A stretch of DNA of 64,000 nt from Macrostomum lignano (lineage: Eukaryota), in contig NIVC01002352.1 of assembly GCA_002269645.1 (NCBI GenBank), positions 117,747 to 181,746 of the forward strand. The letters run 5' to 3'. The notes beneath the pieces were generated by a model. It searched no databases. It saw only the letters and a program-made list of their open reading frames with translations, and was not told the DNA's origin. Positions 3,625-52,506 of the stretch are shown here, one piece after another. A program made the position numbers and the translations under genes. The stretch's first letter is position 1. Each line of letters begins with the position of its first letter.

Positions 3625-10004
<6,380 letters not shown>

Positions 10005-10006
<2 letters not shown>

Positions 10007-12514
10007 GCAGAGCAACAACAGCTCAGCTCAACAGCAGGTGCTCAGCGCTGCGTTCTTCTACCTCAGATCGGCCTCCATTGCAGTCTCCTGTCTGGGCCTC
10101 CTAGCCGGGTCATTTTCGTTTGCAGTCCTGCTCAAGCGCTACCGATCCACCAGGGAAGCCTTCGATGTTGGACTAATCCTGCTGGAGGCCTGCCAGGTAG
10201 CCCACAGCGCCTTCTGCGTGGCCACCTTCTCCTGCGACATGGCCGCTCAGTACACGGGGATCTACAATAACCGAATCTTCTTGGATGCCTATGATGTGAG
10301 CCTGAAGTGTCCATTAGTGCTGAGTACAGTAGCTGTTATGCATTGATTACTCAGGTGGGGTAGGGGCAAGGAAAGCCGTAGCCTAGCGGTCTAATGTGCC
10401 GGTGGCCCAGGCTCGATTCCAAGTGCAGTCACATTAATGTGGGTCTAAATTGGAATCTCGGCTTGGCTCTGCTCGTGCTATTAACGCGGCCTTGAGGGCC
10501 AACCCTCAAGCCACAGTGAAGTGTACATGCTTAATAAGAAATAAAGTTAAGGCCGCTGTACACTCCTGTGTGAGTGCCTGTGCGTGTGACTGCGTACGTA
10601 TCCGCGCACTTAAAGTGCGCTTAAAGTGCGCCAGGGCCTGTATCAAAAGGGGGTGGGGGCAGAGCGGCTCTCAACGGTACAAGCATACCCAGGTTCGATT
10701 CCGCGCGGATTAGCGGAATCGGCGGCTGCCGCCTTACCCACTGTGTTCACAGACCGCACTGTAGCTAAGTCAAAAAGGTATAAAGTCAAATGCATTTGCA
10801 CACAAAACCATGCCGCAGGCAATTTACGCCATAACAACGGCGGCCCTGCTAGTGCGCAACCTGTGGACCATGTGCGTGGCCCTGTTCCGAACCCTGGCCA
10901 CCATCTGGCCCATTGCGATGCGCAGCCGGCTGACCCGGCGGGTCCAGCTGCTGGTGTTCGGCCTGGCGCTCAGCGCCTCTCTGCTCATCGGAGCTCTGTT
11001 CTTTGTGCAACGAACCGCCCAGCTGGACCAGGCCATGCTGCTTCTGTTCAGCCGAGCCCTGCAGGCCTACCTGCCAGTGCCGGTGGTGCTGGCCAGCTCC
11101 GTGGTCATGACCTGCCACCTGTGCCGCGTGAAGCCGCCGACTGTTGGAGCCGCGGCCGCCGCTGCCGCCGCATCACCCGCCACCGCCACAGCCGTGGCGG
11201 GTGCCGAGCCGAACAGAAGGGGAACAATGGCATCCAGGTAGGAATAGAGTAGAAACTTAACAACTATTGATCCACATTTGGTGGCATTGCACATAAAATT
11301 TTGAACACTTTAAAAAAGATTTTAACGTTGAGTTAACAATTACTGGGAGGTATGAAAGTTAGCCGGGGCCTCTGCCAAAACTGGTTAATTTTTACCCGAG
11401 ACAGCCCACAAATAAGCTAACGGGGCAGTAAAACAAGGGGGGTTGAAAACTAGGCAGGGCTATATCTAACGGGGTAGAAAAACAAGGGGGGTTGAAAACT
11501 AGGCAGGGCTATAGCTAACGGGGTAGAAAAACAAGGGGGGCTGAAAACTAGGCAGGGCTATAGCTAACGGGGTAGAAAAACAAAGGGGGCTGAAAACTAG
11601 GCAGGGCTATAGCTAACAGGGCAGAAAAACAAGGGGGTGTTGAAAAGTAGGCAGGGCTATAGCTAACGGGGTAGAAAAACAAGGGGGAGTGAAAACTAGG
11701 CAGGGCTATAGCTAACAGGGCAGAAAAACAGGGGGGTTGAAAAGTAGGCGGGAGAGTTAGGGAGAGAACGATAAAGCTGACAGAGGGGGTTGGAAGAGAG
11801 GTGCCGTGCAGAAATGTAATACGAGTACAAACGTAATTGTACGAAAGTGCATGGACCTGATAGATCGATATAAGCGAAATTCAGCAAATGAATTAATTCT
11901 CTTAGTAAACAGCATTGAGAGTCTGACCTACCTTTTATACTAAGAGGTATCTCGGCGCATCTTTGAACGCTCACATTCAGTCAACTTCCAATTTCCGATT
12001 TCCCATCAGAATTCTGCGCTCTTCATCTCACAGTCTCCAAATACAGCACGGCCTGCAGCACCAACAGAACTCGCGCAACTCTCGAGTAGCAACAGCCATT
12101 GTGCTCTGCTTGGCGGTCACTTTCTACCTGTTCGAGTCACCAGGAGCCGTGGCCATCATGTGCGACTGGCCCGGGGTGGGGTCGCGCATCGACTGGTTTT
12201 ACTGCCTCAACGACATCCTGGTGTCGCTGGACAGCGCCAGTAACTTTCTCATCTTCGTCTGCTTGAGTCGCAGCTTCCGATGCACCGCCCGCACCGCCCT
12301 GCTTGGTTGGTGCCGAGGCGGTGGAAGTGGAGGCCGCGCCGGAAACGGATGCGGCGGCGGCGGGCGTTTCGGAACCGCTCAGCTTCAAAATGGAATCCGT
12401 CGCGGCAAAGACGACGTCGCCATCGACCTGGAAGAGCGTCGGCGATTCGTCACCGATGGCCGACTGGTTGGACGGGGCGGCAGCGAGTCCTGCCTGTGCG
12501 ACGTCAACGTCTGA
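10005..12514 (+). CDS. Rhodopsin-like (class A) GPCR, FMRFamide/peptide-receptor-like, about 396 aa
   Basis: Exons 10005-10295, 10819-11237, 12034-12514 with phases 0 and 2. N-terminal NNS sequon and seven hydrophobic segments; TM6 TFYLFESPGA; TM7 LDSASNFLIFVCLSRSFR. Confidence 0.88.
10372..10637 (+). mobile_element. tRNA-derived SINE family A, copy 1 (GPCR intron 1)
   Basis: A-box TAGCCTAGCGG (10379) and B-box GGCTCGATTCC (10410); body homologous to 13617-13990 and 23300-26440. Confidence 0.75.
11420..11745. repeat. About 41-bp minisatellite in GPCR intron 2
   Basis: About 8 units of aaaactaggcagggctatagctaacggggtagaaaaacaagggggg. Confidence 0.93.
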
Positions 12515-14374: not shown

Positions 14375-14376
14375 GC

Positions 14377-14431
<55 letters not shown>

Positions 14432-14444
14432 GAGACAGACAGAC

Positions 14445-14535
<91 letters not shown>

Positions 14536-14548
14536 GAGACAGACAGAC

Positions 14549-14643
<95 letters not shown>

Positions 14644-14675
14644 GAGACAGACAGACAGAGAGACAGACAGACAGA
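14375..14675. repeat. (GACA)n microsatellite
   Basis: Direct inspection. Confidence 0.97.
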
Positions 14676-14794
14676 CGACAGAGAAGCAGAGACTGAAGTT
14701 AAGAAGCCCAAAGCTGAATAATCACAATACAACAGTCTACTACAATCGTCATGCTCTCTCCCCGCTCCAGCCAAGACTCCGGTCTTGCCCGAAC

Positions 14795-16650
<1,856 letters not shown>

Positions 16651-17751: not shown

Positions 17752-18210
<459 letters not shown>

Positions 18211-18412
18211 GCCCGTCTTCAATTGAATCAGCTCTACATCTTACATGCCCCGCTACTAAACTGAAGCAGATTAACAAAATCCAATCAACAAGAGAGAATG
18301 AGACGATGTCGCTGGGGGGGTGCAAAAATTTGCTCATAGTGGACCGATTCGCGCAAATCAATAATTATCAGTCAGATGAGAAGTCCTGCTGCTAAGCTTC
18401 AATTATCGCAGT

Positions 18413-19626
18413 CTAAGCGGCCTTGGCAACCGTGACAGTGTAACCAAAGTTAGCCTTGAGCTGCTCCAGGAACACGAAGGTGAGCACCGTGTGCGGAGCC
18501 AGACGCACAAACGCCGGCACGATGCCTTTGAAGAAGCCGAAGAACAGGAAACCGGAGGCGTAGATGTCGGCGGCGCAGGCGGAGAGACCCGTGTAGGCGC
18601 CCGGCTTGGCGTTCATCAGGCGAGTCTTCATCACGTCGAACGGCTGCGTGACCAGGGTGGCTGTGCCGCCCGCCCCGAAGCTCGCGGTGAAGTGCGTCAA
18701 CGGGTCGTCGCCGAACAAGCCGGTAGACATCAGGGCGCCCTTGAATAGGTCGTAGAAGGCCAGCTGGCCAAAGGTGACCAGGGCGGCTCGTGTGGACGTC
18801 ATTGAGACTCCGTTCATAACTTTGACGGCGCCCTCATTGCGGCACACCTGCAATGGTCATGGGGTACTCATAGACTGGTCATGGGGTGGGGCTGCCGATG
18901 CTCACAGAATGGTCATGGGTGGAGCTGCAGCTGCTCATAGACTGGTCATGGGGTGGGGCTGCCACTGCTCATAGACTGTTCAGGGTGGGGCTGTCGCTGC
19001 TCATAGACTGGTCATAGGTGGGGCTGCCACAGATCATAGCATTGGTCACAGGACCCGATAACACATGGTAGTACTGCCCTGCTCAAGAGTACATGCACTT
19101 TTAAATCCCATGCACGCAAATAAACAATTGCACAAAAGCAAAATTGGCAATATCAGGTGACTCCACCCACCTGGTAGAGCCCGTCAAACACGTGACGATA
19201 ATTCCTCCGCTGATCCAGCGGCAGTTTGACATCGTTCTGCATGCGCACGTTCACCATGTCGGCCGGGTTGCCAACCACGCCGCCAACGAAGCCGCCAATT
19301 AGGGCGACGCCGGCAGACTCGGCGAACGACATCTTGGCCTGGCCTTTTCTGCTCTTGTAGGTCTCGTAGATGGCAAATCGGGTCATGGAGTACGTCAGCT
19401 GGCGCATGATGGAAGCAGAAAGGCCATTGTACAGTCCCATAATGCCATCCCGCTTCAGCACAACGACACCCATGCGAACCAGCCCAATGTCTGCCTTCTG
19501 CTGCGTCTGCAGATGCACCTTCAGCAGGTCCAACGGATGGGTGCAGGCTGCGGCCATGGCGCTGGCGACTCCACCAAAGTACCAATAGCCCATGTGCTTC
19601 ACTTCTGGCTGCTTGTTGGATGCCAT
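18413..19626 (-). CDS. SLC25A10: Mitochondrial dicarboxylate carrier (SLC25 family), 296 aa
   Basis: Exons 19626-19171 and 18847-18413 (phase 0). DIC-typical WYFGGVASAMAAACTHPLDLLKVHLQTQQ; carrier motifs PADMVNVRMQ and PFDVMKTRLM; YNGLSASIMRQLTYSMTRF; FFKGIVPAFVRLAPHTVLTFVFLEQL. Confidence 0.93.
18855..19035. repeat. About 33-bp minisatellite in the carrier intron, abutting the 3' splice site
   Basis: catagactggtcatggggtggggctgc..ctgct units. Confidence 0.85.
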
Positions 19627-21473
19627 CTTGATGCTGTAAGTCTGAGAAATAGAGCTTGACTATGAGATACCAACTGACTCTCTGGGTAAGATTGTGAGAT
19701 ATTAACTAATTCTCTAGGTGATACCAACTATGAGACTATAATTCTTGACCTAGTTAAATAAATTTATAATAAAAATATTGAAGAGTATTGTTCATATATT
19801 TGAGATAATTATAAATAGTTATTATTTTTTATGCCAACCTTATTTAAATTTTAAAAGAAATACTTATTTTTAGAAATTTCAAGTCAATAAAATTTATATT
19901 ATTATTTGTTTTTAATTATATTTTTAATAGCATTACTACATTTTTCTATCAATATATTATCATAACAATTTCTAATAATCAAGTAGCTATTATATATTAT
20001 TAAATAATTTTAAAATTAAGCTTAACATAGGAAAATTAAAAATTATAATACTTAACTATAATAAGCATAAGGTCAAAACAACTTTAGTAGACCTAATAAA
20101 ACTTTTGCATTTCTATGACTATAAACATAGAACTAGGTCACTAGGGCCAAGGGCCTGCTGCCTATAATGAGAAACTAGGCTTTTTTGAAGGGCACCACTT
20201 TAAAATAATAAACTTAAGAAATAGTAATACAACTAGGCCCAATTTTCTTTATAACAAAACAAGATAAAATTAGATTTTTAGGGAGAGTAGGCACTTTGCA
20301 TCTTACTTAGTAACATACCATGTGCCACTAACTATGCTCTCCTACTGGAAAATTGACTTAACTTTGAGAAAATACCTACTGCCAAAGCAGCCAAACCTAG
20401 GATAATAGCATAGGTCTAGGCTATTGTAATTGTACTAGATGTCGCAGCTGAAAAATGCGCTTGGGGTTAAGGATAAGCCTTTAGTAGCTGACTATAGCCT
20501 ATGCTATGACTATGTGCAGCATGCGCCCATATTGAATTGAGATTCTATTCCTAATTCCCATGTAAAACAGAAGCAGTGCTTATGTCATTGCCAGAAAATG
20601 TGTATAGCCTTTAAGCAAAAATTGATAATAAAAAAATTCAATTAAGTTTACATAAGTTTCCTCTATTTTTAAAAAGAACTTAATGTCATCTTATTTGTTT
20701 TTTAACCTCAATTTGTTACCTAAATATTATATTAAATCGTTCATCTTGAATCGTTGCAAAAAACGAAATTAAATAATCTCTTGTAGCAGATTCTTTTAAA
20801 CATACTAAATCGGAGTTAATAAATTTCTGATGCAAAACAGTCGTTAAAGCATAAGAAACTATTTATTTATTAAAAAAACTGACTGATTTTGTTTTACTTT
20901 GCTGCGCCATGCAAACTTTCGCATTTCGGCAAATGTCCCAGGCTAATACCTTTGAAGGCGCATATTGGTGCAGAGTAGGATTGATTATTGAGAGCTGTTT
21001 AACTTAAAATCACCAGCCTTTCATCATCATGCAATTTTAATTTGCAAAGAGGCTCGTGATCAATAACATTTATATTTTGAAACTTTTTTCAGGATGATAT
21101 CAGAGTTTTTCTAAAAAGCAAGTTAGCAAATATTGTAGCTTTTCGCTAGCTCGAAGATGTTCAAGACAATTTAAAAATTTTTAAGCACTTTAGGTTTTTA
21201 TTGCAATTTTATTTTATTTCGATTTTTTTACTCTCAAGTAGAGCAGACAATACATATTTGTGTCATATCATTCCAATACAATAACAGCAGTCAGCAGATG
21301 ATTTGAACCAACAGTACATGTACGTATACATGCTTCTGTTCATGCAAACAGCAAACTTTGACAAATTTATCCGTCAATCTAGCAACAGATATCAATGTAA
21401 CAAAGATAAGAATAAATTTGCTAGTCATACGAGCTAGTATCTACTTGAAGCTAGCATTACTCGTAAGTCTCAA

Positions 21474-23055
21474 TCAGAACGTGGCGGCAGTCCACTCCTC
21501 AGCTAGGTCAACAGGGCGCGCTTTGAACACAGCGTCCCGAAGTCGTTCAATCGGTGGCGAGCCATGAGGCAACCGACCCAAAGCAAAGATGCTGAGCTTC
21601 ATCTTGGGCCGGGAGGCCCTACCATAGGCATCCTGGATGAGAAACTCACCGGGCGAAAAGTCGAATCGGGCTAGTTTGTGCGGCGACGAGTCTAGCATCG
21701 ACCAGCCGGGCGAGTCGCGCCAATCGGGAAAGTTCATGAAGAACCAGCTGGGGGTCCCGCGGTCCAGGCAGTCAGTGACTCGACGAGCTGCCTCCTCGAG
21801 GACGCTCTCGATAAATGGTGGGTTTACGGACCAGCCTCCCGTGCGCCTGGAGAAGTTCAGCAGTTGCATATTGAAATGGCACCGGATCCTCCCAGATCCT
21901 CAGACTAGATTTAGATTATCTGCAGCCCCCCTACTCCAGACTGTACTGTCACCCTTTCAACTCCTCACTAAATCCTTGAAATTCACCTGGTCAGATCAAT
22001 GTTGAAAAAGTTTCCTAAACTGCCAAACACAGAGTCTGTGTCGGGGAACAGCGAACAGAATCCAGCCTCGTCCAGTCCAAGGAATCGAGAATTCAATGGC
22101 GACGAGAAGCCTTCATAGCGGGCGCCGAAGTCGCGGTAGTAGACCCGGTGCACGCTGAGTGGGTCGCCCCACTGATAGCTTCCGCTGCCAAGAGACTCGT
22201 AGCGCAGCAGCATGCGGGCCGTGGCGGCCAGGCCGAACCGCTGAGCCAGGTAAGGCAGGCGTCGAGAAGCGGACGATTGAAACTCATGGCCAACCCGGAT
22301 GCAGCCTCGATCCTCGTCGAGCATGCGCAGCTCGATAGCCGGCTGTTCGAGGCACTTTTCCGAGTCGTGGCAGCTCCGACGGAAACGTTCGACCTCTGCC
22401 AGCATGCCGATGGCCAAATTGGTGGCCGAGCGACGCAGTCGACAAAATCCTTTATCGTAGGCGTCGGAAGCCAGCAGCTTTGTCTGACGAAAAAGGAGAA
22501 AATTTGGTCTTCGACTCAGTCATAGACGTACAAAGACAACATCAACATGCCAGTTGCTTATCACAGGTGTACAGAAAGCAGGTAAGGCCAATATAAAAGC
22601 AGAAATATAGTATGAGTCACGTCATACGCATGCAATGTTGATATACGGTATGATTATTGAGGCCTGAATAAATCAGCCTGAGGATCTGAGAGTGTGTCAG
22701 GCAATCAGACATCCAACTAAAATACGAGGTAATGTCGCAGCTTCACCTTCTGATCATCCGACCGCATGCCAATTGGGAACAGCGGCAGCTGCTTATCCAT
22801 CTTGGTGCTGCATCCTCCGTCGCTAACCGCATCAGCTTGCTGCAAGCTAAGGATCCATCGCTCAACAATATTTGTAGCCTCGCGGAGGCCGCTTCCGACG
22901 CCACGGCCGCCGCCTCGTCTACTATTGGGATTTCTCTCCTCGGAAAGTTGTAGAAATTTCTGCACCAAAGTGTCGCAGAATTGCTTTTGCCGGTACTCGA
23001 TGGCCAGGCCATTGTCAACTGATTTTTCGCTGTCAGATTTAGTGATAGAATTCAT
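21474..23055 (-). CDS. PCIF1: PCIF1/CAPAM-like cap-adjacent adenosine N6-methyltransferase, about 392 aa, no WW domain
   Basis: Exons 23055-22747, 22483-21987, 21846-21474 (phase 0,2). Motifs LLRYESLG..SYQWG.P, EGFSSPLNS, FCSLFPDTDSVFGSLG, GGWSVNPPF and WFFMNFPDW match the remembered PCIF1 core (FECFASPLNC, YCSAFPDTDGYFGSRG, GSFEANPPF, FIVFIPEW). Symbol indicates family; orthology unproven. Confidence 0.85.
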
Positions 23056-23897: not shown

Positions 23898-26377
23898 CGT
23901 GCTATAGATTTAAGAGCAAGGGAGTAAGGAGTTAGAAGTCAGGAGTGGTCCTAGCAAAGAGTAAATCGATTTTGTGTGCTATAAAGTTCAAGAATCAAGA
24001 GTTAGGAGCTAGGAGTTGTTCCAGGGATAGGAGTGAGGACTTCTAAGGAGTGTAAGGTGATTGGCTAAGGAGTCTGCCAATCTGTGTGCTATATTAAACT
24101 CCTAAATGTATGCACCTTTAGGAGTAATTCTAGGAATTAAATAACAAGTTAAAATAAGTTTTATTACCCTGTGAAAAGCGGCTATGAGCGCGTAAAGCAA
24201 TAAAACCATTTGAGGCTAACAAGCCTGCCATTTAATTGGTGGAGGGAGCGCATTTAATTAGTTGATAGACTAAAGTAAATAAAAAATGGTTTAACTGCTA
24301 TTGTAATTAATTGCTCTCATTTGATAAACAACTAACACTCGTATAAGAAATATCGTAAAAGAAGGGTGCTATCAGAGGGTCGCTTTCACAAGCCCTAAAT
24401 TTCACAACGTCGCAAGACACAAACTTTCATAAGCTCTAAATTTCATAAACCCTAATTTTCACATCGTCGAAAAGTTGTGCACAGTATTTCATAAGCTCTA
24501 AATTTCACAAGCTCTAAATTTCACAACGTCGAAAACAAAACTTGCATCAGACTGCATAAACTATAAATTTCACAAGCCCTAAATTTCACAAGCCATACTT
24601 TTCATAAGACCTAATTTTCACAACGTCGAAAAGTTGTGCACAGAATTTCATAAGCTCTAAATTTCACAAGCTCTAAATTTCACAACGTCGAAAAACACTA
24701 TGGAGATACAATCTTTCACAAGACCTAAATTTCACAACGCCTAAAAACATGGCTTTTAAGCATTTTAAGCATGGCTTTTAAGCTTTTAAGCTTTTAAGCA
24801 TAGCTTTTAAGATACAATCTTTCACAAGACCTAAATTTCACAACGCCTAAAAACATGCCAGACACGGTAGGGTTTGGCTACACGGGGGGCAGACACGTAC
24901 CCAGATTCGATGGAAGCTTTTTAGGCGTTGTGAAATTTAGGTCTTGTGAAAGATTGTATCTCCATAGTGTTTTTAGGCGTTGTGAAATTTAGGTTAAAAC
25001 ATGTCTTTTAGACGTTGTGAAATTTAGGTCTTGTGAAAGATTGTATCTCCATAGTGTTTTTAGGCGTTGTGAAATTTAGGTCTTGTGAAAGATTGTATCT
25101 CCATAGTGTTTTTAGGCGTTGTGAAATTTAGGTCTTGTGAAAGATTGTATCTCCATAGTGTTTTTAGGCGTTGTGAAATTTAGGTCTTGTGAAAGATTGT
25201 ATCTCCATAGTGTTTTTAGGCGTTGTGAAATTTAGGTCTTGTGAAAGATTGTATCTCCATAGTGTTTTTAGGCGTTGTGAAATTTAGGTCTTGTGAAAGA
25301 TTGTATCTCCATAGTGTTTTTAGGCGTTGTGAAATTTAGGTCTTGTGAAAGATTGTATCTCCATAGTGTTTTTAGGCGTTGTGAAATTTAGGTCTTGTGA
25401 AAGATTGTATCTCCATAGTGTTTTTAGGCGTTGTGAAATTTAGGTCTTGTGAAAGATTGTATCTCCATAGTGTTTTTAGGCGTTGTGAAATTTAGGTCTT
25501 GTGAAAGATTGTATCTCCATAGTGTTTTTAGGCGTTGTGAAATTTAGGTCTTGTGAAAGATTGTATCTCCATAGTGTTTTTAGGCGTTGTGAAATTTAGA
25601 GCTTGTGAAATTTAGAGCTTCTGAAAATAGAAGCAAATTTAATTTTCGACATTGTGATATTTAGGGTTTGTGAAATTTAGGGTTTGTGAAATTTAGAGAT
25701 AGTGAAATTTAGGGCTTTTGAAATTCTGTGCATGCCTTTTAGGTGTTATGAAATTTAGGGCTTGTGAAATTTAGGTCTTGTGAAATCTGCTGCATTGCTT
25801 ATTTTCGACGTTGTGAAAATTAGGGTTTATGAAATATAGGTCTTATGAAAGGTTCTGGTTTCGACGTTGTGAAAATTAGGGTTTGTGAAACGACCCTCTA
25901 TCAGAGACCATAAAATTGGTCATTTTTGTTATTCAGCAAACGTGCCCGTTTCACTTTTTAGCACAGACATTGCGAAATCCAAGATTGTGATGTTTTAAGA
26001 TGCAACATATCTTTGTTGAAATTGGCGTTGATTCTCATTGAGCGGAAATCATGACACAGTACGAATCAGTGATGACCCACTTTTTGATTTTCGAAAAAGC
26101 TTGTCCTTTGCTTAAATTGCCTGGGTCGCCGATTGTTGGCTCCCTCATCGTCTGAGCCTAGGTCGCTATCCGAAAACATGACAAAAAAAGACACTCCTTA
26201 CTAACCTAAGAGTAAAATTTGGCCCTTGAAATCTCATCTAGGAGTTAGGAGCTAGAAATGAAATTCGCTCCTTCTATAGGACACGCACTCCTAAACTCAC
26301 TCCTAAACGGCAATTCCTAGCTCCTAGCTCCTACTCCCCGCTCCTTATTCTATAGCACGCGACAAACCTATAGCACG
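23898..26377. mobile_element. Non-autonomous TIR element with CGTGCTATAG termini and AGGAG/CTCCT subterminal motifs
   Basis: cgtgctataga at 23898 and ctatagcacg at 26350 and 26368; mirror-image AGGAG-rich and CTCCT-rich subtermini. TSD and superfamily unresolved. Confidence 0.7.
24377..25896. mobile_element. Foldback-like (MULE-type) element with long internally repetitive inverted arms
   Basis: Termini gggtcgctttcacaagccctaaatttcacaacgtcg / cgacgttgtgaaaattagggtttgtgaaacgaccc; 9-bp TSD gctatcaga (24368) / tctatcaga (25897) with one mismatch; right arm has a 52-bp unit x about 13. Confidence 0.8.
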
Positions 26378-34019: not shown

Positions 34020-35015
34020 GGAAGTCTTCTGGGGAACTTCAGGCCTCTGAGGGGCATAAACGATAGTTTCTTCAGGCTTCTGAGGGGTGGCCTCTAGACT
34101 TCTGAGGGAACCAGTAAGGGTGTCCTCTTCAGGCTTCTAAGGGGCATAAACGGTAGTTTCTTCAGGCTTCTGAGGAAACCGGGTGAGGGTGTCCTCTTCA
34201 GGCTTCTGAGGGGCATAAACGGTAGTTTCTTCCGGCTTCTGAGGGAACCGGGTGAGGGTGTCCTCTTCAGGCTTCTGAGGGAACAGGTGGCCTCTACAGG
34301 CTTCTGAGGGAACAGGTGGCCTCTTCAGGCTTCTGAGGGAACAGGTGGCCTCTTCAGGCTTCTGAGGGAACAGGTGGCCTCTTCAGGCTTCTGAGGGAAC
34401 AGGTGGCCTCTTCAGGCTTCTGAGGGAACAGGTGGCCTCTTCAGGCTTCTGAGGGAACAGGTGGCCTCTTCAGGCTTCTGAGGGAACAGGTGGCCTCTTC
34501 AGGCTTCTGAGGGAACAGGTGGCCTCTTCAGGCTTCTGAGGGAACAGGTGGCCTCTTCAGGCTTCTGAGGGAACAGGTGGCCTCTTCAGGCTTCTGAGGG
34601 AACAGGTGGCCTCTTCAGGCTTCTGAGGGAAGAGGTGGCCTCTTCAGGCTTCTGAGGGAACAGGTGGCCTCTTCAGGCTTCTGAGGGAAGAGGTGGCCTC
34701 TTCAGGCTTCTGAGGGAACAGGTGGCCTCTTCAGGCTTCTGAGGGAACAGGTAGCCTCTTCAGGCTTCTGAGGGGCATAAGCGGTAGTTTCTTCAGGCTT
34801 CTGAGGGAACAGGTGGCCTCTTCAGGCTTCTGAGGGAACAAGTGGCCTCTTCAGGCTTCTGAGGGAACAGGTGGCCTCTTCAGGCTTCTGAGGGAACAAG
34901 TGGCCTCTTCAGGCTTCTGAGGGAACAGGTGGCCTCTTCAGGCTTCTGAGGGAACAAGTGGCCTCTTCAGGCTTCTGAGGGAACAGGTGGCCTCTTCAGG
35001 CTTCTGAGGGAACAA
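34020..35015. repeat. 29-bp minisatellite (gaacaggtggcctcttcaggcttctgagg)
   Basis: About 25 homogeneous units preceded by longer variant units. Confidence 0.96.
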
Positions 35016-40250: not shown

Positions 40251-41589
40251 ATAACATCACATGAAGTAAACTCAAGCGAATTTAATAAGTGTTGATAATA
40301 GTACATGCTCACATTCATTTTTACCTGCTGTTACTTGTTTGTTAAATCAGTGAGGTGAGACGGCTCTGCCAGGCCGCAACATTTCAGCATAGTTTTAGCG
40401 CAGCGGGTGAGATTTTTTTCAATGAGAATGGCACTCATTTTCGCTAAGGGGTCAGCTGACTCCATTGTCCTCCTCTGAATGGCTCTAATCCAGGAGTCTT
40501 GATCAACTCATACAGGTGAATTTTGCGTCCATTTACAATGTTAAAAATATGTTTCTGTTCTGTAATTTTAGGAGCTTTTGATTTTAGCTGTTCGAATATC
40601 TTATTTTTAAACCTAAAAATAAAAAATATTGAGCATTCTGGAGCAGCACTCTTCTTACTGATTAAAACCTGTTTCTGCAAATATATTTGAATTTTTTAGT
40701 TGTTTAAATCCATTGATGGTTTTCGGCCTTTCGGCCCCCTTTTGGGGAAGCCTTCGGGCCTCAGGTCTCAGAAATAAATCAATTAGAGTCCTGGCCCCCC
40801 ACTCCTGTCAGATGGTCAGCCCCATGGTAGCTTGATCGTGTGGCGAGCAGTCTAGGTCCTATAACTAAGAGAGGGACAGCGAGAGACAAGCAGGGAGGCT
40901 TTTGAAGGTAGAGATTAGCTAATCCGCAAATTAAATAACCCGCTGCCACCAGCCCGTGCGTCCTGGCTCACCAAACCGGGACTCTCGAAATCGGGCTTCC
41001 GACTAGAGGGGGCTTAGCACTTACCTGCCAACTAGTGTCTTTTTGCTGTCAATCTCGAAGTCACAGCCGATGATAAGGGACACTGCTGGGACTTGATCGC
41101 ATTGGCCATGCAGGTACAGAGGGGACTTGTGCAGGGGATTCTTGCAGTGGCGAGACTATGGGGTAGCTACATGTACTATTACATTGCTAAATACGAAGAA
41201 TTGTACTTTTGGCCTTCAACGCGCCAACTAGCCTCTCGTAGCGCTGATGATAGGCCAACTCGAACCTCAGAGACCGCATGATTCATTACCATGATGCATG
41301 ATGCATAGCAGATTCATGGTAGCAGAATAGGCCTGGAAATTGACTTACATGTATTCTATCTATTATGTACAAATCACAACAAATTTCAGAACGCAGGTTT
41401 ACAATCTACTGAATGATAGACTTTTGCAAAGAGAAAAATCTTGTAGAATCTGCTAATACTTTTCTTACTGTACATTTTGCACTAAACCAAACTTGGACGT
41501 AGTTATGTGGAATTGATTTAAAGCTTAAAGTACTAAATTTAATTCTTATCAGCATTAAGGCTGGTGGGATTTATGCTTTATGGATCAGT

Positions 41590-43020
41590 GGAGACAGGTA
41601 CCATCTATATTAAGGATCGGGGCAGACAGGTACCATCTATATTAAGGATTGGGCAGACAGGTACCATCTATATTAAGGATTGGGCAAACAGGTACCATCT
41701 ATATTAAGGATTGGGCAAACAGGTACCATCTATATTAAGGATTTGGGCAGACAGGTACCATCTATATTAAGGATTTGGGCAGACAGGTACCATCTATATT
41801 AAGGATTGGGCAAACAGGTACCATCTATATTAAGGATTTGGGCAGACAGGTACCATCTATATTAACGATCGGGGCAGACAGGTACCATCTATATTAAGGA
41901 TCGGGGCAGACAGGTACCATCTATATTAACGATCGGGGCAGACAGGTACCATCTATATTAAGGATTGGGCAAACAGGTACCATCTATATTAAGGATCGGA
42001 GCAGACAGGTACCATCTGTATTAAGGATTGGGCAGACAGGTACCATCTGTATTAAGGATCAGGGCAGACAGGTACCATCTATATTAAGGATCGGGGCAGA
42101 CAGGTTCCATCTGTATTAAGGATTGGGCAGACAGGTACCATCTGTATTAAGGATCAGGGCAGACAGGTACCATCTATATTAAGGATTGGGCAGACAGGTA
42201 CCATCTATATTAAGGATTGGGCAGACAGGTACCATCTGTATTAGGGATCAGGGCAGACAGGTACCATCTATATTAAGGATTGGGCAGACAGGTACCATCT
42301 GTATTAAGGATCAGGGCAGACAGGTACCATCTGTATTAAGGATCAGGGCAGACAGGTACCATCTATATTAAGGAACAGGGCAGACAGGTACCATCTATAT
42401 TAAGAATTGGGCAGACAGGTACCATCTATATTAAGGATCGGAGCAGACAGGTACCATCTATATTAAGAATTGGGCAGACAGGTACCATCTATATTAAGGA
42501 TTGGGCAGACAGGTACCATCTATATTAAGGATTGGGCAGACAGGTACCATCTATATTAAGGATTGGGCAGACAGGTACCATCTATATTAAGGATCGGGGC
42601 AGACAGGTACCATCTGTATTAAGGATCGGAGCAGACAGGTACCATCTATATTAAGGATCGGGGCAGACAGGTACCATCTATATTAAGGATCAGGGCAGAC
42701 AGGTACCATCTATATTAAGGATCGGGGCAGACAGGTACCATCTGTATTAAGGATCAGGGCAGACAGGTACCATCTATATTAAGGATTGGGCAGACAGGTA
42801 CCATCTGTATTAAGGATCGGAGCAGACAGGTACCATCTGTATTAAGGATCGGAGCAGACAGGTACCATCTATATTAAGGATCGGGGCAGACAGGTACCAT
42901 CTGTATTAAGGATCGGAGCAGACAGGTACCATCTGTATTAAGGATTGGGCAGACAGGTACCATCTATATTAAGGATTGGGCAGACAGGTACCATCTATAT
43001 TAAGGATCAGGGCAGACAGG
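41590..43020. repeat. 31-32-bp minisatellite (gggcagacaggtaccatctatattaaggat), same family as the terminal satellite but inverted
   Basis: About 45 units; reverse complement atccttaatatagatggtacctgtctgccc matches gatccttaat(at)agatgctacctgtctcccc. Confidence 0.96.
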
Positions 43021-43102
43021 TAGAAGGATCAAGGTAGGCAGGAAGCGACTCACTGAATAATTGGGTCCATCAGTTTCAAGTTCTATCTATACAATATATA
43101 AC

Positions 43103-46112: not shown

Positions 46113-49100
46113 TCAGTAGTAGTTAATCAGCGCGATCAACACAGTGACAGTCACCAGGAGGCTCGCAGTCGGCAGTCTCAAGCAACCTCGTTTTTCTAGG
46201 GTTGGCGGACACTCGCTGCCGCCACCGCCGTTCTCTCGCTGCAGACCCGCGGCTTGGCAGGTCAACAAGTCGCTGTCGCAGGTCACAGGCCGGCCATCGC
46301 ACTGCGCCTGGTGCAGTAGCACGGACACCGAGTTGCTCGACTCCCAATCGGCTGCCGTCAGCGAGATCTGTTCAAGATCGATCGGGTTTTATGAGATTCC
46401 ATTTTTAAGCATTTTGAAGCTTTACACAGCCTTACCTGAAGCAGCAAAAACATTCGCTGGTCTTCGAATAGACTATCGTGTATCTCTTGCAGCTCGCACT
46501 TCACGATGTCTCCGCTGATGTAAACAGACGGTGTCGAGTAATTGAGACTGGAGTTCAGCTGGATGTTGCACACAGAGTCAGTGGACCTCAGCAATGGTTT
46601 TACGCTCAGGTAGACAGCCGTGCACTTGTCGGAGGAGCAGAAGATGCTCCGTTGCAGCAGCTCAACCTCGATAGGAATTTCGTCTCGCCTGGCGATCTCA
46701 AACTCGCAGCCGGGACCCCAGAATCCGTCCATGCAGGCGCATTCGCCACTTAGACACTGGCCTCTGCCTGAGCAGTTTGATGGGCACAGATCTTCAACCA
46801 GAGCCTCAATCTTGCTGGAGTTTCCCAGAACCACGGATGCATTGTAGGTCATCTCTGTGTAGCACATGCCCAGCATCGAGTTAAACAGGGACTGAGTCGA
46901 GTCGAATGTTCCAAGCACAGTGGCATATTGAGCACATATAAGCTTAAACTGGCTGATATAATCTGCTTGACCGGTGGGATCTTTCATTTGAGCACAGATG
47001 TCAGTGCTGACAGACCTTCTCAGCTGAAGCTGCACGAACGTGTTGCAGAACTCATCTGCCTCTTTCTGCGATATTTCTCTTTTTGGGAGTTGCTGAAAGG
47101 AAACCGCGCCTTTATTTACAGGGGCTGCTTCAGCCGTTCGTTTGTCTCTTTTGACATTATTAATTGATACGAAGCAGTTGCTCGTCAGTAATTCTTTTTT
47201 ACCACACGTGCAGATGCCAAGAATTTCAGTGGGCTGGATTCGTTTAGAATAGTCTTTAATGGCGGGCATTTGAAACTGAGAAGAGAACATGTTGTCTATA
47301 TTACTATCGATTGGGCCTCGATTTGATCCATAAATAAGTCCTTCCACCATGTTTGGTGTATCGTAAAATCCGGGCACAACCATCACATCCAGAGCGATTC
47401 GGCCATTTCCAACAGGATAAAAGCTCTTTGCACAAGAAGACGCAGCTTGCATATTTGCGTTACTCATTACAAAGTTCCCAAGGCAGTCTCTTAAAGAGCC
47501 AGTCCTGAAGCCCCACACGTAGAGAATCGTTCCATACAATTTGAAGCGGATTTTCATTGCATATCCAACGTTTTCTGCTGTCACCCCGAAAGGCAATCCG
47601 TCTCGTTCAAGTGGTAATGTCAAATTTCGGCGACTCGAATCCCGATCTCTCGGAGGAACTTTATATGTAACTTCCGGATTTTGAATAGATCCGGTTGAAC
47701 TGCTACCTCGAATCGAAATTATGTAGTACAAATAGCGCATTGATATTTCCGTTACGTACCAGCCATCCACTTTCACTTGTATCTCATAAGGGAGGATTCT
47801 GTGAGCCAATAAGCTGTAGTAGCCATTACTAATACCGAAAGTTTCCTCGGATGTGTAGGCTGACTTTGCCGTCTTCACCTGGGGATCGGTGTAAAGATGC
47901 AAATAGGTAGTGACGTCTGTCATTAATCTTGACAAGTCAACTTTCATTTCGATATTCTGGATTTTAAGAGGGAACCAAGTACCATTGCTCAAAACAGTGA
48001 AAAGACCGTCTGCCATTGAAGCGAATGAAATATTCACTTTGATAATGCTGATCTGCTGACCCTTTGTCAAACCGAGCGGGATTCGATTGTCAGGATCATG
48101 ATTGTAGAGCATCATATCGATGCACACCTTCTTGTTTTTGCGCCGGTCGTTTTTCATCGCAAATCCACAACTCAAACTTTCATTTCCATCGCGTCTTATA
48201 ATAGAAACATCAATTTGATCAGTTGAAATAATCTGCTGTCTACCCACTGAGACGAAAAACTGTACTTCTGTTAAGGCAGGAATGTTCACTGAGTCGATGC
48301 ATAGAGAAGTCGGCTCATTCGGTGTGATCACATCTCTGGCTCCTTGAAAATAGTGCTTGAAGTAAAATCCGTGACTATTCGAAACTACAGGCATGGAGTT
48401 GTACTCAGCTCCAGAGTTTCGGCATTTCGCACGACTACGACAAGTTAGTGATCCGCCATACACATTGGTTTCTCTGGCAAGTACATACTCGGACCTGCAC
48501 TCAAAAGTTCGGTTTTTGCCAACCCCAATAGAGATATTATTCGAAACGCATTTCTGAATCAGCACTGACGTTCCATTTCTAAAGTTCAGCTCAAACTCTA
48601 TCCGATAAAGCACTCCATTAGCCTCGCTTGTGTTGACTTGGAAAGAAGCAAAAACGTTGCACCTAAAAAGAGCTTTGTACTGACCATTAGGTTTCACTTC
48701 ATAATCTAAGCGCAACTGAGGCGCTAAAGCATTCTCGGTCAGCTTTGGCAGACACTGTGTTTGTCTGATACAGGGCTCGAACCCTGTGCCTTCCACGGAG
48801 ATGAGGCCAGCGTCGCAGGGTGCCTTGCTTCCTATGCAATAGTGATTAAGAAAGCTCGGTAAAGGCTGAAGGTAGTACAGAGTCAGCTCAGAGAAGCACT
48901 TCAGAATGCGCACTGGATAGCTTGTGTCGCCAGACAAAAAGCATGAGCCGGTCAGGTTAGGCCGATAGCGGTATGCCCTGGCTCTTAACAGGATTCTGTT
49001 GGCATTGTCTTCCTGTTTAATGGTTTCGTTAACAAGGAAATACGCTTGTTGACTACCGCAGGCTATGGCGCCTGTCGGACAGCCAATTACTAATTGGCCG

Positions 49101-49468
49101 CCAGCAGGAGATGCCAAACGGTACCAGTCAGCTTTAATGACAGAGAAGTCCACACACGGTAGGTCTGGCGACTCTCCACAAATCATTGCATTGCCGAGCC
49201 TGTGCACTGCTTGTGAGTCGTGAATCACCTGTTTGGATTTCCAATCGGCGCACGGGTCCGAAGTCACGAACAAAGTTTCGCATCGAATGCCGTAAGAATT
49301 AGGAGTGCAGATGCACTCATAATTAAGAGAGTCAAAAGTGCCGCCGTTCTCGCAGATGAGTGAACTGATTGATATTGAGCAGTTCAGAGCAACGACCAGA
49401 ATAGACAGGCTCAAGCTGAGCATACGCTGATGTTGCATTCTGTGGACGAAAAAAAATTGATCATACAA
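46113..49468 (-). CDS. VWDE-like secreted/surface glycoprotein (signal peptide, EGF, D8C-like module, degenerate VWD-like region, EGF, hydrophobic/GPI-like tail), about 1090 aa
   Basis: Exon 49468-46436 (true ATG may be a few codons in), 68-nt intron 46435-46368, exon 46367-46113. Signal MLSLSLSILVVALNCS; EGF CENGG..CICTPNSYGIRCE; DPC...ADWYRL..AGGQL..GC...CGS; CPSNCSGRGQCLSGECACMDGFWGPGCE; tail LPTASLLVTVTVLIALINYY. Confidence 0.8.
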
Positions 49469-51441: not shown

Positions 51442-52506
51442 CAGGCGCGTCGGCGCCAGGGGGGACAGGGGGGACATGCCCCCCAGTAAAAGCTTTGGGG
51501 GGCATGCCAATGCTTTGTCCCCTCCACCCCACCTTGTGAGTCGTTGTGGTAATCAATAATTTTTCTTCAAGGCGCCAAAATATAGCGCTTTCGGCGCTAA
51601 AATGAGTGCCTGCGGCGCTAAAATGAGTGCCTGCGGCGCTAAAATGAGTGCCTGCGGCGCTAAAATGAGTGCCTGCGGCGCTAAAATGAGTGCCTGCCGC
51701 GCTAAAATGAGTGCCTGCGGCGCTAAAATGAGTGCCTGCGGCGCTAAAATGATTGCCTGCGGCGCTAAAATGAGTGCCTGCGGCGCTAAAATGAGTGCCT
51801 GCGGCGCTAAAATGAGTGCCAGCGGCGCTAAAATGAGTGCCTGCGGCGCTAAAATGAGTGCCTGCGGCGCTAAAATGATTGCCTGCGGCGCTAAAATGAG
51901 TGCCTGCGGCGCTAAAATGAGTGCCTGCGGCGCTAAAATGAGTGCCTGCGGCGCTAAAATGAGTGCCTGCGGCGCTAAAATGAGTGCCTGCGGCGCTAAA
52001 ATGAGTGCCTGCGGCGCTAAAATGAGTGCCTGCGGCGCTAAAATGAGTGCCTGCGGCGCTAAAATGAGTGCCTGCGGCGCTAAAATGAGTGCCTGCGGCG
52101 CTAAAATGAGTGCCTGCCGCGCTAAAATGATTGCCTGCGGCGCTAAAATGAGTGCCTGCAGCGCTAAAATGAGTGCCTGCGGCGCTAAAATGATTGCCAG
52201 CGGCGCTAAAATGAATGCCTGCGGCGCTAAAATGAATGCCTGCGGCGCTAAAATGAGTGCCTGCGGCGCTAAAATGAGTGCCTGCGGCGCTAAAATGAGT
52301 GCCAGCGGCGCTAAAATGAGTGTCTGCGGCGCTAAAATGAGTGCCTGCGGCGCTAAAATGAGTGCCTGCGGCGCTAAAATGAGTGCCAGCGGCGCTAAAA
52401 TGAGTGTCTGCGGCGCTAAAATGAATGCCAAAAGTTTGTCCTGTACATGTACATGTTGAATTCTTGGCTTTGTCCCCCCACCATAAAATCCATGGCGACG
52501 CCCCTG
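51442..52506 (+). mobile_element. hAT-type MITE carrying an internally amplified 21-bp array
   Basis: TIRs caggcgcgtcggcgcc / ggcgacgcccctg; perfect 8-bp TSD atcaatag (51434-51441, 52507-52514). Confidence 0.9.
51590..52430. repeat. 21-bp minisatellite (ctaaaatgagtgcctgcggcg) x about 40
   Basis: Direct inspection. Confidence 0.97.

Follow-up and report, generated by a model that had tools for sequence, protein, structure and literature searches.

The gene and its locus

Within the window, by which we mean the whole 64-kb stretch of Macrostomum lignano DNA that was analysed, a three-exon gene with GT..AG splice sites is found on the minus strand. Its 392-aa product is 100% identical to GenBank PAA58636.1 (BOX15_Mlig008908g2, Macrostomum lignano, "hypothetical protein"), which bears out the spliced length of about 392 residues given in a preliminary description of this DNA. 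The products of the g1 and g3 copies of Mlig008908 differ from that of g2 by 1-3 residues. The features of the locus are as follows.

Exon 1: 22747..23055, minus strand; 309 nt, aa 1-103, start codon at 23055-23053; contains the two first long helices, the ERW motif E65-R66-W67 (22863-22855) and LPLFP
Intron 1: 22484..22746, minus strand; 263 nt, phase 0, GTGAAG...TTTTCGTCAG (ends TCGTCAG)
Exon 2: 21987..22483, minus strand; 497 nt, aa 104-269; completes the N-terminal helical/beta-hairpin module and encodes the methyltransferase domain's first half, with the motifs RYE..GSGSYQWGDP, EGFSSPLNS and FCSLFPDTDSVFGSLG
Intron 2: 21847..21986, minus strand; 140 nt, phase 2, GTGAAT...CTTCTCCAG (ends CTCCAG)
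Exon 3: 21474..21846, minus strand; 373 nt, aa 269-392, stop codon at 21476-21474; contains the second half of the methyltransferase domain
NPPF codons (N277-P278-P279-F280): 21813..21824, minus strand; read from the sequence
PF12237 (PCIF1_WW) span: 21663..22225, minus strand; aa 190-330, split by intron 2
N-terminal helices span: 22349..23010, minus strand; aa 16-148, split by intron 1; the module extends through a beta-hairpin at aa 153-167
Two AATAAA polyadenylation signals: 21197..21218, minus strand; 256 and 272 nt 3' of the stop codon

The GC content of intron 1 is 0.41, compared to 0.57 for the coding sequence. An in-frame TGA (23073-23071) lies 6 codons upstream of the ATG, and the positions of the AATAAA signals would imply a 3' UTR of approximately 0.28 kb. 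An alternative in-frame acceptor at 21888, which adds 14 amino acids, was rejected because the insertion is absent from the deposited model and from all relatives. Rfam families, tRNA genes and SL RNA genes were each looked for in the 64-kb window, and none was found.

Nearby lie genes for a mitochondrial carrier, a calpain and a GPCR as well as a teneurin-like gene, and this synteny is common to the homeologous NCBI locus. There are three homeologous copies, all of them on long contigs. Compared to the homeologous copy L053, the flanks are about 97.7% identical, the exons differ at 10 of 1179 positions (3 nonsynonymous, 7 synonymous), and the introns at 7 of 403 positions, 5 of which are among the 263 of intron 1. 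The GC3 of the gene (0.65) is near that of the neighbouring genes. Given its introns, its animal neighbours, and a homeologous copy with that 3 to 7 balance of nonsynonymous and synonymous differences, Mlig008908 copy g2 is a native M. lignano gene. From the same sequences, it appears to be under purifying selection.

A PCIF1/CAPAM-family methyltransferase

The 392-aa protein is a member of the PCIF1/CAPAM family with an intact catalytic motif and a predicted Rossmann-fold methyltransferase domain. It matches PF12237 with 95.6 bits (E-value 3.3e-27, for a Pfam cut-off of 31.1) in residues 190-330, and Pfam reports PF12237 as the sole domain in the g2 protein and in all M. lignano paralogues. 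A sequence search of the solved structures gives significant matches only to zebrafish CAPAM (E-value 1.5e-14) and human CAPAM (1.3e-12), and hhalign against the human CAPAM core aligns residues 187-361 with a probability of 99.9%. For the AlphaFold2 model of the whole protein (pLDDT 89.3, pTM 0.88), the Foldseek matches to the PDB ranked 1-4 are all CAPAM (E-values 1.3e-13 to 3.5e-12), and the next match has an E-value of 2.3e-3. Both profile and structure searches uphold the family membership that the preliminary description had proposed.

The motifs quoted in that description (NPPF, FSSPLN, FPDTD..FGS.G and several at the N-terminus) are all present. Those at the N-terminus are IEYRQKQFCDTLVQKFLQL (aa 19-37), NIVERWILSLQ (62-72) and LPLFP (90-94), followed later in the protein by FSSPLN (229-234), FPDTDSVFGSLG (249-260) and NPPF (277-280). 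The flatworm NPPF aligns with N553-F556 of human PCIF1. In our 58-sequence alignment (A1), N277 and P278 are invariant, P279 and R66 are at least 90% conserved, and the flatworm protein retains 11/11 invariant and 16/16 near-invariant columns.

Absence of a WW domain

The WW domain of animal PCIF1 binds the Ser5-phosphorylated Pol II CTD. No such domain is present in the 392-aa flatworm protein. Pfam finds PF00397 (WW) neither in the flatworm protein nor in 58 relatives, and a tblastn search of the 64-kb window with the human PCIF1 WW domain has a best E-value of 1.4. Upstream on the gene's strand, there is no reading frame of the form W-x(18-25)-W-x2-P except an unrelated one 7 kb off. As a control, PF12237 and PF00397 are found together in all but 2 of the 120 vertebrate PCIF1 proteins listed; these are the best 120 of 706 matches in a database search with human PCIF1, and all 120 are vertebrate. 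The supplements of the M. lignano genome paper include no PCIF1 entry. The earlier observation of a WW-less PCIF1/CAPAM-like gene is confirmed. Without a WW domain, docking to the CTD in that way is impossible, so that the protein would reach its substrates post-transcriptionally or via other partners.

The N-terminal module

In the AlphaFold2 model, the N-terminal module is predicted with confidence and has helices at residues 16-41, 53-78, 102-113 and 120-143, and strands at 153-157 and 163-167. The preliminary description took this N-terminus to be the start of the PCIF1 helical domain, which our comparisons reproduce transitively but not directly. The profile of the compact N-terminus matches that of the long eukaryote-type N-terminus (probability 80.6%), which in turn matches the start of the vertebrate helical domain (95%). 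The direct profile comparison between the compact N-terminus and the vertebrate helical-domain start is not significant (1.2%), and a single-template hhalign comparison results in an E-value of 8.8e-4 with a probability of 23%. When the N-terminal 186 residues are modelled alone (pLDDT 79), Foldseek does not recover CAPAM, the best match having an E-value of 0.35. The profiles weakly suggest that the module is homologous to the CAPAM helical domain, by way of the intermediate profile only.

The helical domain had also been described as much shortened. That is the case relative to vertebrates, where the spacing from ERW to NPPF is 318 residues in human and 211 in the flatworm protein, but not relative to chytrid and viral homologues, which have an equal spacing (190-212 residues).

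Relatives and phylogeny

Compact proteins of the giant-virus and protist type are more similar to the flatworm protein than canonical animal PCIF1 is. The flatworm protein matches proteins on giant-virus-like contigs with 131-149 bits (29-35% identity over approximately 77-80% of its length), chytrid PCIF1 with 71-80 bits, and CAPAM with 51-57 bits over about 115-120 residues (about 34% identity over about 120-130 residues). By structure, Foldseek assigns TM scores of 0.61-0.68 to proteins of CroV, Hokovirus and Pithovirus (LCPAC103), versus 0.55 to CAPAM. Structural matches in BFVD come from Bodo saltans virus, CroV, Hokovirus, Tetraselmis virus, pithovirus-like viruses and Salmon gill poxvirus. 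Three of the homologues are on dense, intronless giant-virus-like contigs, where they adjoin an intein-bearing PolB, DUF5767 and EsV_1_7_cys, and relatives are encoded at 46 IMG/VR loci, many of them on giant-virus MAGs. In all, about 2300 representatives at 50% identity match the flatworm protein. Cellular homologues are known from algae, for example C1E0K4 of Micromonas. Some relatives are fused to other domains, namely a SNF2/ResIII helicase, the N-terminus of an XRN 5'-3' exonuclease, and Exo_endo_phos.

In a neighbour-joining tree, all the M. lignano families and four further sequences are monophyletic with a bootstrap of 96/100 (89-96% across neighbour-joining trees). The four further sequences are P0002 (from a JGI contig), P0004 (SRR21676451), and P0006 and P0007 (found in UniParc only). 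This flatworm clade groups with a virus-rich compact clade, apart from a group of canonical and long eukaryote-type proteins on whose canonical side chytrid PCIF1 falls. The split from that group has a support of 68-69/100, and since the deep branching comes from neighbour-joining and long-branch effects are possible, we take it as moderate evidence. Bit scores, TM scores and tree together support placing the flatworm family nearer to the giant-virus/protist-type compact homologues than to canonical animal PCIF1, as the preliminary description had anticipated. For the related proposition that the family is not an ordinary animal PCIF1 orthologue, the sequence evidence is moderate. By its sequence and model, the flatworm protein is assigned to a compact WW-less PCIF1-like subfamily of giant viruses and some algae, which we characterise by an ERW helix motif, RYE..GxxQWGxP, PF12237 as the only domain, and a length of 300-470 aa. 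The database label 'PCIF1_WW domain-containing protein' conceals this large WW-less subfamily.

Paralogues in M. lignano

The gene is no single special case; it belongs to one of at least 5 divergent paralogue families of PCIF1-like genes in M. lignano. One paralogue lineage has GPPF in place of NPPF, and at Mlig000263 members of the family form a tandem array. In the paralogue Mlig021227, the first intron (placed by eye) is in phase 0 and 3-4 residues away from intron 1 of Mlig008908, so that the two introns may be of shared origin. The transcript RNA1509_7323, which contains PF12237, is among the M. lignano germline candidate genes (PMC5173321 supplement), where its best UniRef50 match is to Micromonas (6e-21) versus 8e-11 for human PCIF1. 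This published transcript suggests that one family member is germline-expressed. Among other sequenced flatworms, we found no named homologue of the flatworm clade.

Proposed function and alternative explanations

Taken as a whole, the locus is best explained, in our judgement probably correctly, by a native WW-less compact enzyme that writes cap m6Am and is not an orthologue of canonical PCIF1. The protein has two modules: about 170 N-terminal residues form a helical/beta-hairpin domain, and a domain of the SAM-dependent adenine-N6 methyltransferase type follows. The cap would be held where the two meet. The enzyme would most likely place a methyl group from SAM on N6 of the (2'-O-methyl)adenosine next to the cap, in capped Pol II transcripts whose first nucleotide is A, and so produce m6Am in the manner of CAPAM. 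Its substrates would be found after transcription or through other partners, and not by WW-CTD docking. As for its origin, it may derive from an old transfer between viruses or protists and the animal lineage, in either direction, or it may be an ancient paralogue that was retained. Catalytic activity, the cap-adjacent substrate, CTD independence and the direction of any transfer are inferences. The literature searched contains no biochemical data on the flatworm protein or on any member of the compact clade. Honey bee PCIF1 keeps NPPY, yet cap m6Am is undetected there (PMC9479742), and for that reason motif conservation is no guarantee of activity. The preliminary description also named spliced-leader RNA as a possible substrate. 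In the published M. lignano sequence of this RNA the first nucleotide is C (PMC8629364), so trans-spliced mRNAs (about 30% of genes) would not be substrates at position 1, and the spliced leader is disfavoured as a target. The earlier interpretation as a whole is partly supported.

Several other explanations have been considered. The gene could be a vertically inherited, ordinary PCIF1 orthologue that, in this fast-evolving flatworm lineage, shed its WW domain along with part of the helical domain and was then duplicated, its grouping with viral proteins being a long-branch artefact. Such a history is unlikely: it would agree with the deep-node support of just 68-69% and with the lack of a canonical M. 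lignano WW-PCIF1 in any of our searches, which were not designed to find one, but it leaves unexplained that the giant-virus-like similarity is far higher and covers far more length than the CAPAM similarity, that TM scores to the viral compact proteins exceed those to CAPAM, that the PCIF1 of chytrids, which are opisthokonts, sides with the canonical group and not with the flatworm clade, and that the clade has no named homologue in other sequenced flatworms. There is also a minor probability that the protein is an active adenine-N6 methyltransferase with another substrate, for which Sm-class snRNAs (at their first nucleotide), adenines inside RNAs, and DNA are candidates. The PCIF1 family derives from DNA methyltransferases (PMC4738411), the diversified paralogues could reflect different substrates, and the flatworm protein has neither the WW domain nor the vertebrate-type expansion of the helical domain, while its N-terminal module is not demonstrably a CAPAM cap-binding domain. 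Even so, CAPAM is the only significant match among solved structures, the ERW/PLxP motifs of the N-terminus are common to longer eukaryotic PCIF1 proteins, and the fusions seen in relatives involve enzymes of transcription and of the mRNA 5' end, all of which speak against another substrate. We consider it improbable that the protein is catalytically silent and acts by binding caps or RNA, in the way of Drosophila Pcif1, because the g2 copy retains NPPF and every invariant residue of the family, and the substitutions between copies are conservative; the precedent for silence is that activity has been lost and the gene kept elsewhere, as with NPPH in the fly and NPPY without detected m6Am in the bee (PMC9479742), and that one M. 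lignano paralogue lineage carries GPPF.

Gene context and introns lead us to reject the remaining readings, those of a mobile element, a contaminant and a viral insertion. PCIF1-clade methyltransferase domains do occur in DIRS1 polyproteins (PMC4738411), the M. lignano genome is repeat-rich, and the family has multiple copies, some of them arrayed in tandem at Mlig000263, so that the domain could have come from, or been carried by, a DIRS1-type retrotransposon or other mobile element. We regard this as highly improbable, given that the surroundings of the gene contain no ORF for a reverse transcriptase, RNase H or tyrosine recombinase, that in all paralogues Pfam finds PF12237 alone, that the catalytic motif is preserved, in contrast to the degeneration reported for DIRS1 copies (PMC4738411), and that the gene has spliceosomal introns and a synteny with ordinary genes that is conserved in its homeologue. 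That the locus is a contaminant of the assembly, or a giant-virus insertion that became endogenous recently, and not a functional animal gene, is extremely improbable. Although the nearest relatives outside the flatworm clade are viral, the gene has two spliceosomal introns and a host-like GC3, there are animal genes on both sides and no other viral hallmark gene in the window, and the three homeologous copies on long contigs have synonymous changes in excess.

Returning to the native cap m6Am writer, a more elaborate version of it can be proposed, which we put forward as quite speculative. The flatworm lineage would have acquired a CTD-independent cap adenosine methyltransferase of the giant-virus or alga type, and expanded it into a germline-expressed multi-gene family with a catalytically dead branch, whose present role is to mark, or to read, caps in one particular class of RNAs (transcripts that begin with A and escape trans-splicing, snRNAs, or RNAs of transposons or viruses). 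If this were true, the cap mark might serve as a self/non-self or germline regulatory signal, and the acquired family may replace a lost canonical PCIF1.

Work on cap m6Am and on PCIF1 as its writer has centred almost exclusively on vertebrates; among the usual invertebrate models, C. elegans is not known to have the gene and Drosophila carries a dead enzyme. M. lignano is amenable to RNAi and transgenesis and has a number of WW-less PCIF1-like genes that are intact, so that three questions become tractable in it: what a minimal core of helical and methyltransferase domains is capable of without docking to the Pol II CTD, what role the giant-virus homologues have, and whether such enzymes can move between viruses, protists and animals.

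Comparison with known systems

Vertebrate PCIF1/CAPAM (human Q9H4Z3, 6IRV/6IRW; zebrafish 6IRX-6IS0) shares with the flatworm protein PF12237, the Rossmann domain with NPPF, and the motifs EGF(A/S)SPLN and FCSxFPDTDxxFGSxG. The N-terminal helix pair, with its (N/E)RW and PL(L/F)P motifs, is linked to it via the intermediate profiles. Human PCIF1 has about 704 aa, compared with 392 in the flatworm protein, which has neither the WW domain nor the disordered linker and in which the distance from RW to NPPF is 211 instead of 318. The two belong to different clades.

Giant-virus compact proteins, such as those of CroV (E3T4I2), Hokovirus (A0A1V0SFI2), Bodo saltans virus (A0A2H4UTM5), Tetraselmis virus 1 (A0A2P0VNQ5) and many GVMAG contigs, have approximately 300-470 aa, no WW domain, the same two-module layout, and the ERW and RYE..G(S/Q)QWG.P motifs. 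They are matched by Foldseek with E-values of 1e-15 to 1e-9 and TM scores of up to 0.61-0.68, and form the partner clade in the tree. The literature searched describes no characterised viral member. Viral homologues are encoded without introns and reside in viral genomes, whereas the flatworm gene has introns, a host-like composition and animal neighbours, and the flatworm clade is separate (96% bootstrap), not nested in a particular viral lineage.

Chytrid and other non-animal PCIF1 proteins, annotated as 'mRNA (2'-O-methyladenosine-N(6)-)-methyltransferase' (Rhizoclosmatium and Chytriomyces are examples), have no WW domain by Pfam either, and their ERW-to-NPPF distance of about 205-211 residues is the same as in the flatworm. 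At 486-517 aa they exceed the flatworm protein in length, being extended at both the N- and the C-terminus, and fall on the canonical side of the tree. The DIRS1 methyltransferase domain is likewise a PCIF1-clade adenine methyltransferase (PMC4738411), but it is catalytically degenerate and part of a polyprotein with reverse transcriptase and tyrosine recombinase, neither of which is true of the flatworm gene. Finally, Drosophila Pcif1 (CG11399), also an invertebrate member of the PCIF1 family, is the converse case: it keeps the WW domain, has NPPH and no m6Am activity (PMC9479742), whereas the flatworm protein keeps NPPF and has no WW domain.

The gene and its catalytic core

The gene is copy g2 of Mlig008908 and lies on the minus strand. 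It was assembled from three open reading frames joined via canonical GT..AG introns of 263 and 140 nt, with the following parts.

23055-22717, 22417-21983 and 21869-21474, minus strand, open reading frame segments of the gene
23055-22747, minus strand, exon 1 after joining at the splice sites
22483-21987, minus strand, exon 2 after joining at the splice sites
21846-21474, minus strand, exon 3 after joining at the splice sites

An in-frame TGA precedes the ATG by six codons, and two AATAAA signals are found at about 260-270 nt downstream of the stop. The spliced product has the 392 aa given in the preliminary description and includes every motif quoted there. GenBank entry PAA58636.1 (BOX15_Mlig008908g2, "hypothetical protein", Macrostomum lignano) has the identical sequence (100%), so an annotation made independently arrives at the same gene model. 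The g1 and g3 copies differ from this product by 1-3 residues.

The assignment to the PCIF1/CAPAM family, made at first from the motifs, is borne out by profile and by structure. The sole Pfam match is PF12237 (PCIF1_WW), scoring 95.6 bits where the cut-off is 31.1; whatever the name implies, this model spans the methyltransferase region and not the WW domain. In the whole of the PDB only CAPAM sequences match significantly, from zebrafish (E 1.5e-14) and from human (1.3e-12), over aa 202-322. Profile comparison aligns aa 187-361 to the human core with probability 99.9%. The AlphaFold2 model, built from a 58-sequence alignment, has pLDDT 89.3 and pTM 0.88, and CAPAM entries fill ranks 1-4 of its Foldseek search against the PDB (E 1e-13 to 4e-12), with the next match at E 2e-3. 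The NPPF motif is kept at 277-280, as are all 11 invariant and all 16 near-invariant columns of the 58-sequence alignment.

Absence of a WW domain

The WW domain was reported missing from the sequence alone, and we find none in the window, in the protein or in its relatives. The human PCIF1 WW domain, used as a tblastn-type probe across the 64-kb window (probe sequence checked against PDB chains 6IRV, 6IRX and 2JX8), gives no match (best E 1.4), and no WW-like pattern occurs in the window 5' of the gene on the same strand. Pfam WW is found in 0/58 relatives; as a positive control, all but 2 among the best 120 listed vertebrate PCIF1 proteins carry both PF12237 and PF00397. The nearest relative outside M. 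lignano, on a transcript-like metagenome contig (L006), has an ORF that begins at the homologous position (MATHISPLSIEYKQ...) behind a 46-nt leader, and intronless viral homologues start at the same place. Since there is no hidden WW exon and these starts match, we take the N-terminus to be complete. Because the WW domain is missing, recruitment would be independent of the Pol II CTD, judging from the protein sequence.

The N-terminal helical module

In the AlphaFold2 model, helices 16-41, 53-78, 102-113 and 120-143 and a beta-hairpin all precede the Rossmann domain. The proposal that this region is the start of the CAPAM helical domain holds only in part, through an intermediate and not directly. 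Longer eukaryotic PCIF1 proteins provide the link: their N-termini are matched by a profile built from compact N-termini (probability 80.6%, E 1.3e-5, 82 columns including EY.., ERW and PLxP) and in turn match the region where the vertebrate helical domain begins (95%, E 3.8e-8). Compared directly with the vertebrate helical domain, the compact profile is not significant (1.2%); a single-template run gives E 8.8e-4 and probability 23%, and the N-terminal 186 aa, when modelled without the rest of the protein (pLDDT 79), give no CAPAM match in Foldseek. The description of this domain as much shortened is likewise right relative to vertebrates only: the spacing from R66 to N277 is 211 residues, against 318 for the same RW-to-NPPF spacing in human PCIF1 and 190-212 in chytrid and viral homologues.

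A family of compact genes in M. lignano

HMMER, run exhaustively over 1.84 billion representatives, gives 2300 family members (E <= 1e-3), of which the top matches are further M. lignano genes.

Other M. lignano PCIF1-like genes (gene or accession; protein; length; motif; remark)
Mlig000263; P0237; 1283 aa; NPPF in each unit; three tandem units of ~415 aa
Mlig021227; P0003; 440 aa; NPPF
Mlig030305; P0240; 361 aa; NPPF
Mlig015920; P0238; 372 aa; GPPF; catalytic Asn replaced
A0A1I8J898; P0239; 1170 aa; GPPF; 84% identical to Mlig015920

With only 28-50% identity among themselves and to the window protein, the families go back to old duplications. In the P0238/P0239 lineage the catalytic asparagine is lost and the RY..GQQWG motif is also changed, which suggests from sequence a non-catalytic branch. 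The tandem units of P0237, P0364 and P0365 (Mlig000263 g6, g4 and g2) are nearly identical, and each by itself makes up a whole compact PCIF1-like protein, NPPF included; the 1283-aa model represents either a genuine protein of tandem repeats or three tandem genes that annotation has fused.

In neighbour-joining trees (337-340 columns, 100 bootstraps), the five M. lignano families and the unplaced P0002, P0004, P0006 and P0007 are monophyletic with 96% bootstrap (89% in an earlier, smaller sampling). The neighbour of this group in the tree is the virus-rich compact clade, and the two split from canonical vertebrate, chytrid and other long eukaryotic PCIF1 with 68-69% support. The window protein model reaches TM 0.61-0.68 to viral compact proteins and 0.55 to CAPAM. 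Both results favour the suggested closeness to giant-virus-type homologues over canonical PCIF1. No named homologue from other flatworms was found in a profile search with the M. lignano clade.

Viral and other relatives

The best matches outside M. lignano are metagenome proteins of 300-470 aa. The three contigs inspected are dense, intronless and giant-virus-like: P0021 adjoins a family-B DNA polymerase with an intein and DUF5767, P0018 is on a 453-kb contig that carries an EsV_1_7_cys protein, and P0017 has Gad2 and glycosyltransferase domains as neighbours. A scan of IMG/VR gives 46 viral loci with relatives, many on giant-virus MAGs. Viral structure matches include Bodo saltans virus, Cafeteria roenbergensis virus, Hokovirus, Tetraselmis virus 1, pithovirus-like MAGs and Salmon gill poxvirus. 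The poxvirus protein, A0A0H4XWM9 (315 aa, "uncharacterized protein"), has a compact PCIF1-like fold (Foldseek E 4e-9, BFVD) that its annotation does not mention.

On giant-virus contigs (L020, IMGVR_UViG_3300042867_001974; L012-L017; L037, IMGVR_UViG_3300048924_000446), the compact module is fused to an SNF2/ResIII-Helicase_C helicase, either between both helicase lobes (1033- and 1280-aa ORFs) or behind a complete helicase (806 aa, NPPF degenerate). Three metagenome/Logan proteins (P0235, P0057, P0229) show other fusions: an XRN 5'-3' exonuclease N-terminus or glycosyltransferase family 8 before the PCIF1-like module, and Exo_endo_phos nuclease/phosphatase after it. The helicase, XRN and Exo_endo_phos fusions point to transcription and mRNA-end metabolism.

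The window protein is already in databases under automatic names, and automatic annotation has likewise labelled WW-less PCIF1-domain proteins of several giant viruses, including one mentioned for Kaumoebavirus (PMC7909422). Iyer et al. describe the PCIF1 clade as usually WW-fused, with inactive DIRS1 copies (PMC4738411). We found no paper on flatworm PCIF1, nor any linking giant viruses with m6Am. Three points appear to be new: that an animal has a clade of compact PCIF1-like genes, WW-less and mostly with NPPF intact; that this clade has expanded to several families; and that it has affinity to the viral subfamily.

Genomic setting

The window gene is a native animal gene. Neighbouring ORFs are the following.

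6142-6684, minus strand, calpain protease
11963-12514, plus strand, Srw-type GPCR fragment
19153-19626, minus strand, mitochondrial carrier, downstream of the gene on the same strand
46358-49468, minus strand, 1036-aa ORF with a teneurin-like EGF repeat

The homeologous g1 locus (L053, NIVC01001446.1) has an equal gene span with the carrier gene likewise downstream. The two copies differ at 10/1179 exon positions (3 nonsynonymous, 7 synonymous) and 7/403 intron positions, with flanks ~97.7% identical, a pattern that would fit purifying selection, the sample being small. The CDS has GC 0.57 and GC3 0.65, near the neighbours' values, with introns at 0.41-0.46. No reverse transcriptase or recombinase ORF was found near the gene, and no SL RNA gene, Rfam family or tRNA in the window.

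Satellites and microsatellites are abundant throughout. A satellite made of about 342 copies of a 30-bp unit (TGCTACCTGTCTCCCCCGATCCTTAATAGA) occupies 10 kb at 53812-63997, reaching the window end, and is the cause of the strong GC skew in that part. At 41578-43022, 32-bp units form a 1.4-kb array that looks like a reverse-oriented member of the same family. Unusually dense are tetranucleotide microsatellites (247-363, 624-1234, 5611-6126, 14376-14682, 17764-18211) and minisatellites with 21-58 bp units (1720-2454, 3983-4368, 8695-9813, 25006-25610, 34099-35014, 51592-52429). Several mechanically called long ORFs are translated repeats only. Strings of the GAGGATCTG(G/A)GAG type occur in both introns of the gene (intron 2, 21890-21905; intron 1, 22660-22690); they resemble the 32-bp minisatellite unit at 16009-16116 and may be dispersed-repeat fragments.

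Expression, substrate and comparison with CAPAM

Among M. lignano germline candidate genes, RNA1509_7323 carries PF12237; its human PCIF1 match has e=8e-11 and its best UniRef50 match, a Micromonas protein, e=6e-21 (Grudniewska et al. 2016 supplement, PMC5173321). The best UniRef50 match of an M. lignano PCIF1-like transcript is Micromonas sp. RCC299 C1E0K4 (PMC5173321 Figure 3-source data 1), so the compact subfamily also occurs in a green-alga genome, as a cellular or an integrated viral gene.

Spliced-leader RNA had been proposed as a possible target. The published M. lignano leader, CGGTCTCTTACTGCGAAGACTCAATTTATTGCATG (PMC8629364), argues against it: provided that this sequence has its full 5' end, trans-spliced mRNAs carry C next to the cap. 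By analogy with CAPAM, the window protein is probably an active adenine-N6 methyltransferase, and we lean very slightly towards a cap-adjacent adenosine as the substrate. Candidate RNAs would be A-initiated mRNAs without trans-splicing and Sm-class snRNAs.

In CAPAM, the helical and methyltransferase domains are enough for catalysis and grip the cap between them, NPPF is catalytic, and the WW domain is dispensable for methylation, with Pol II CTD binding as its only role (PMC8287941). A counterpart of the cap-holding half of CAPAM in the window protein is plausible but unproven; its catalytic half is present beyond reasonable doubt.
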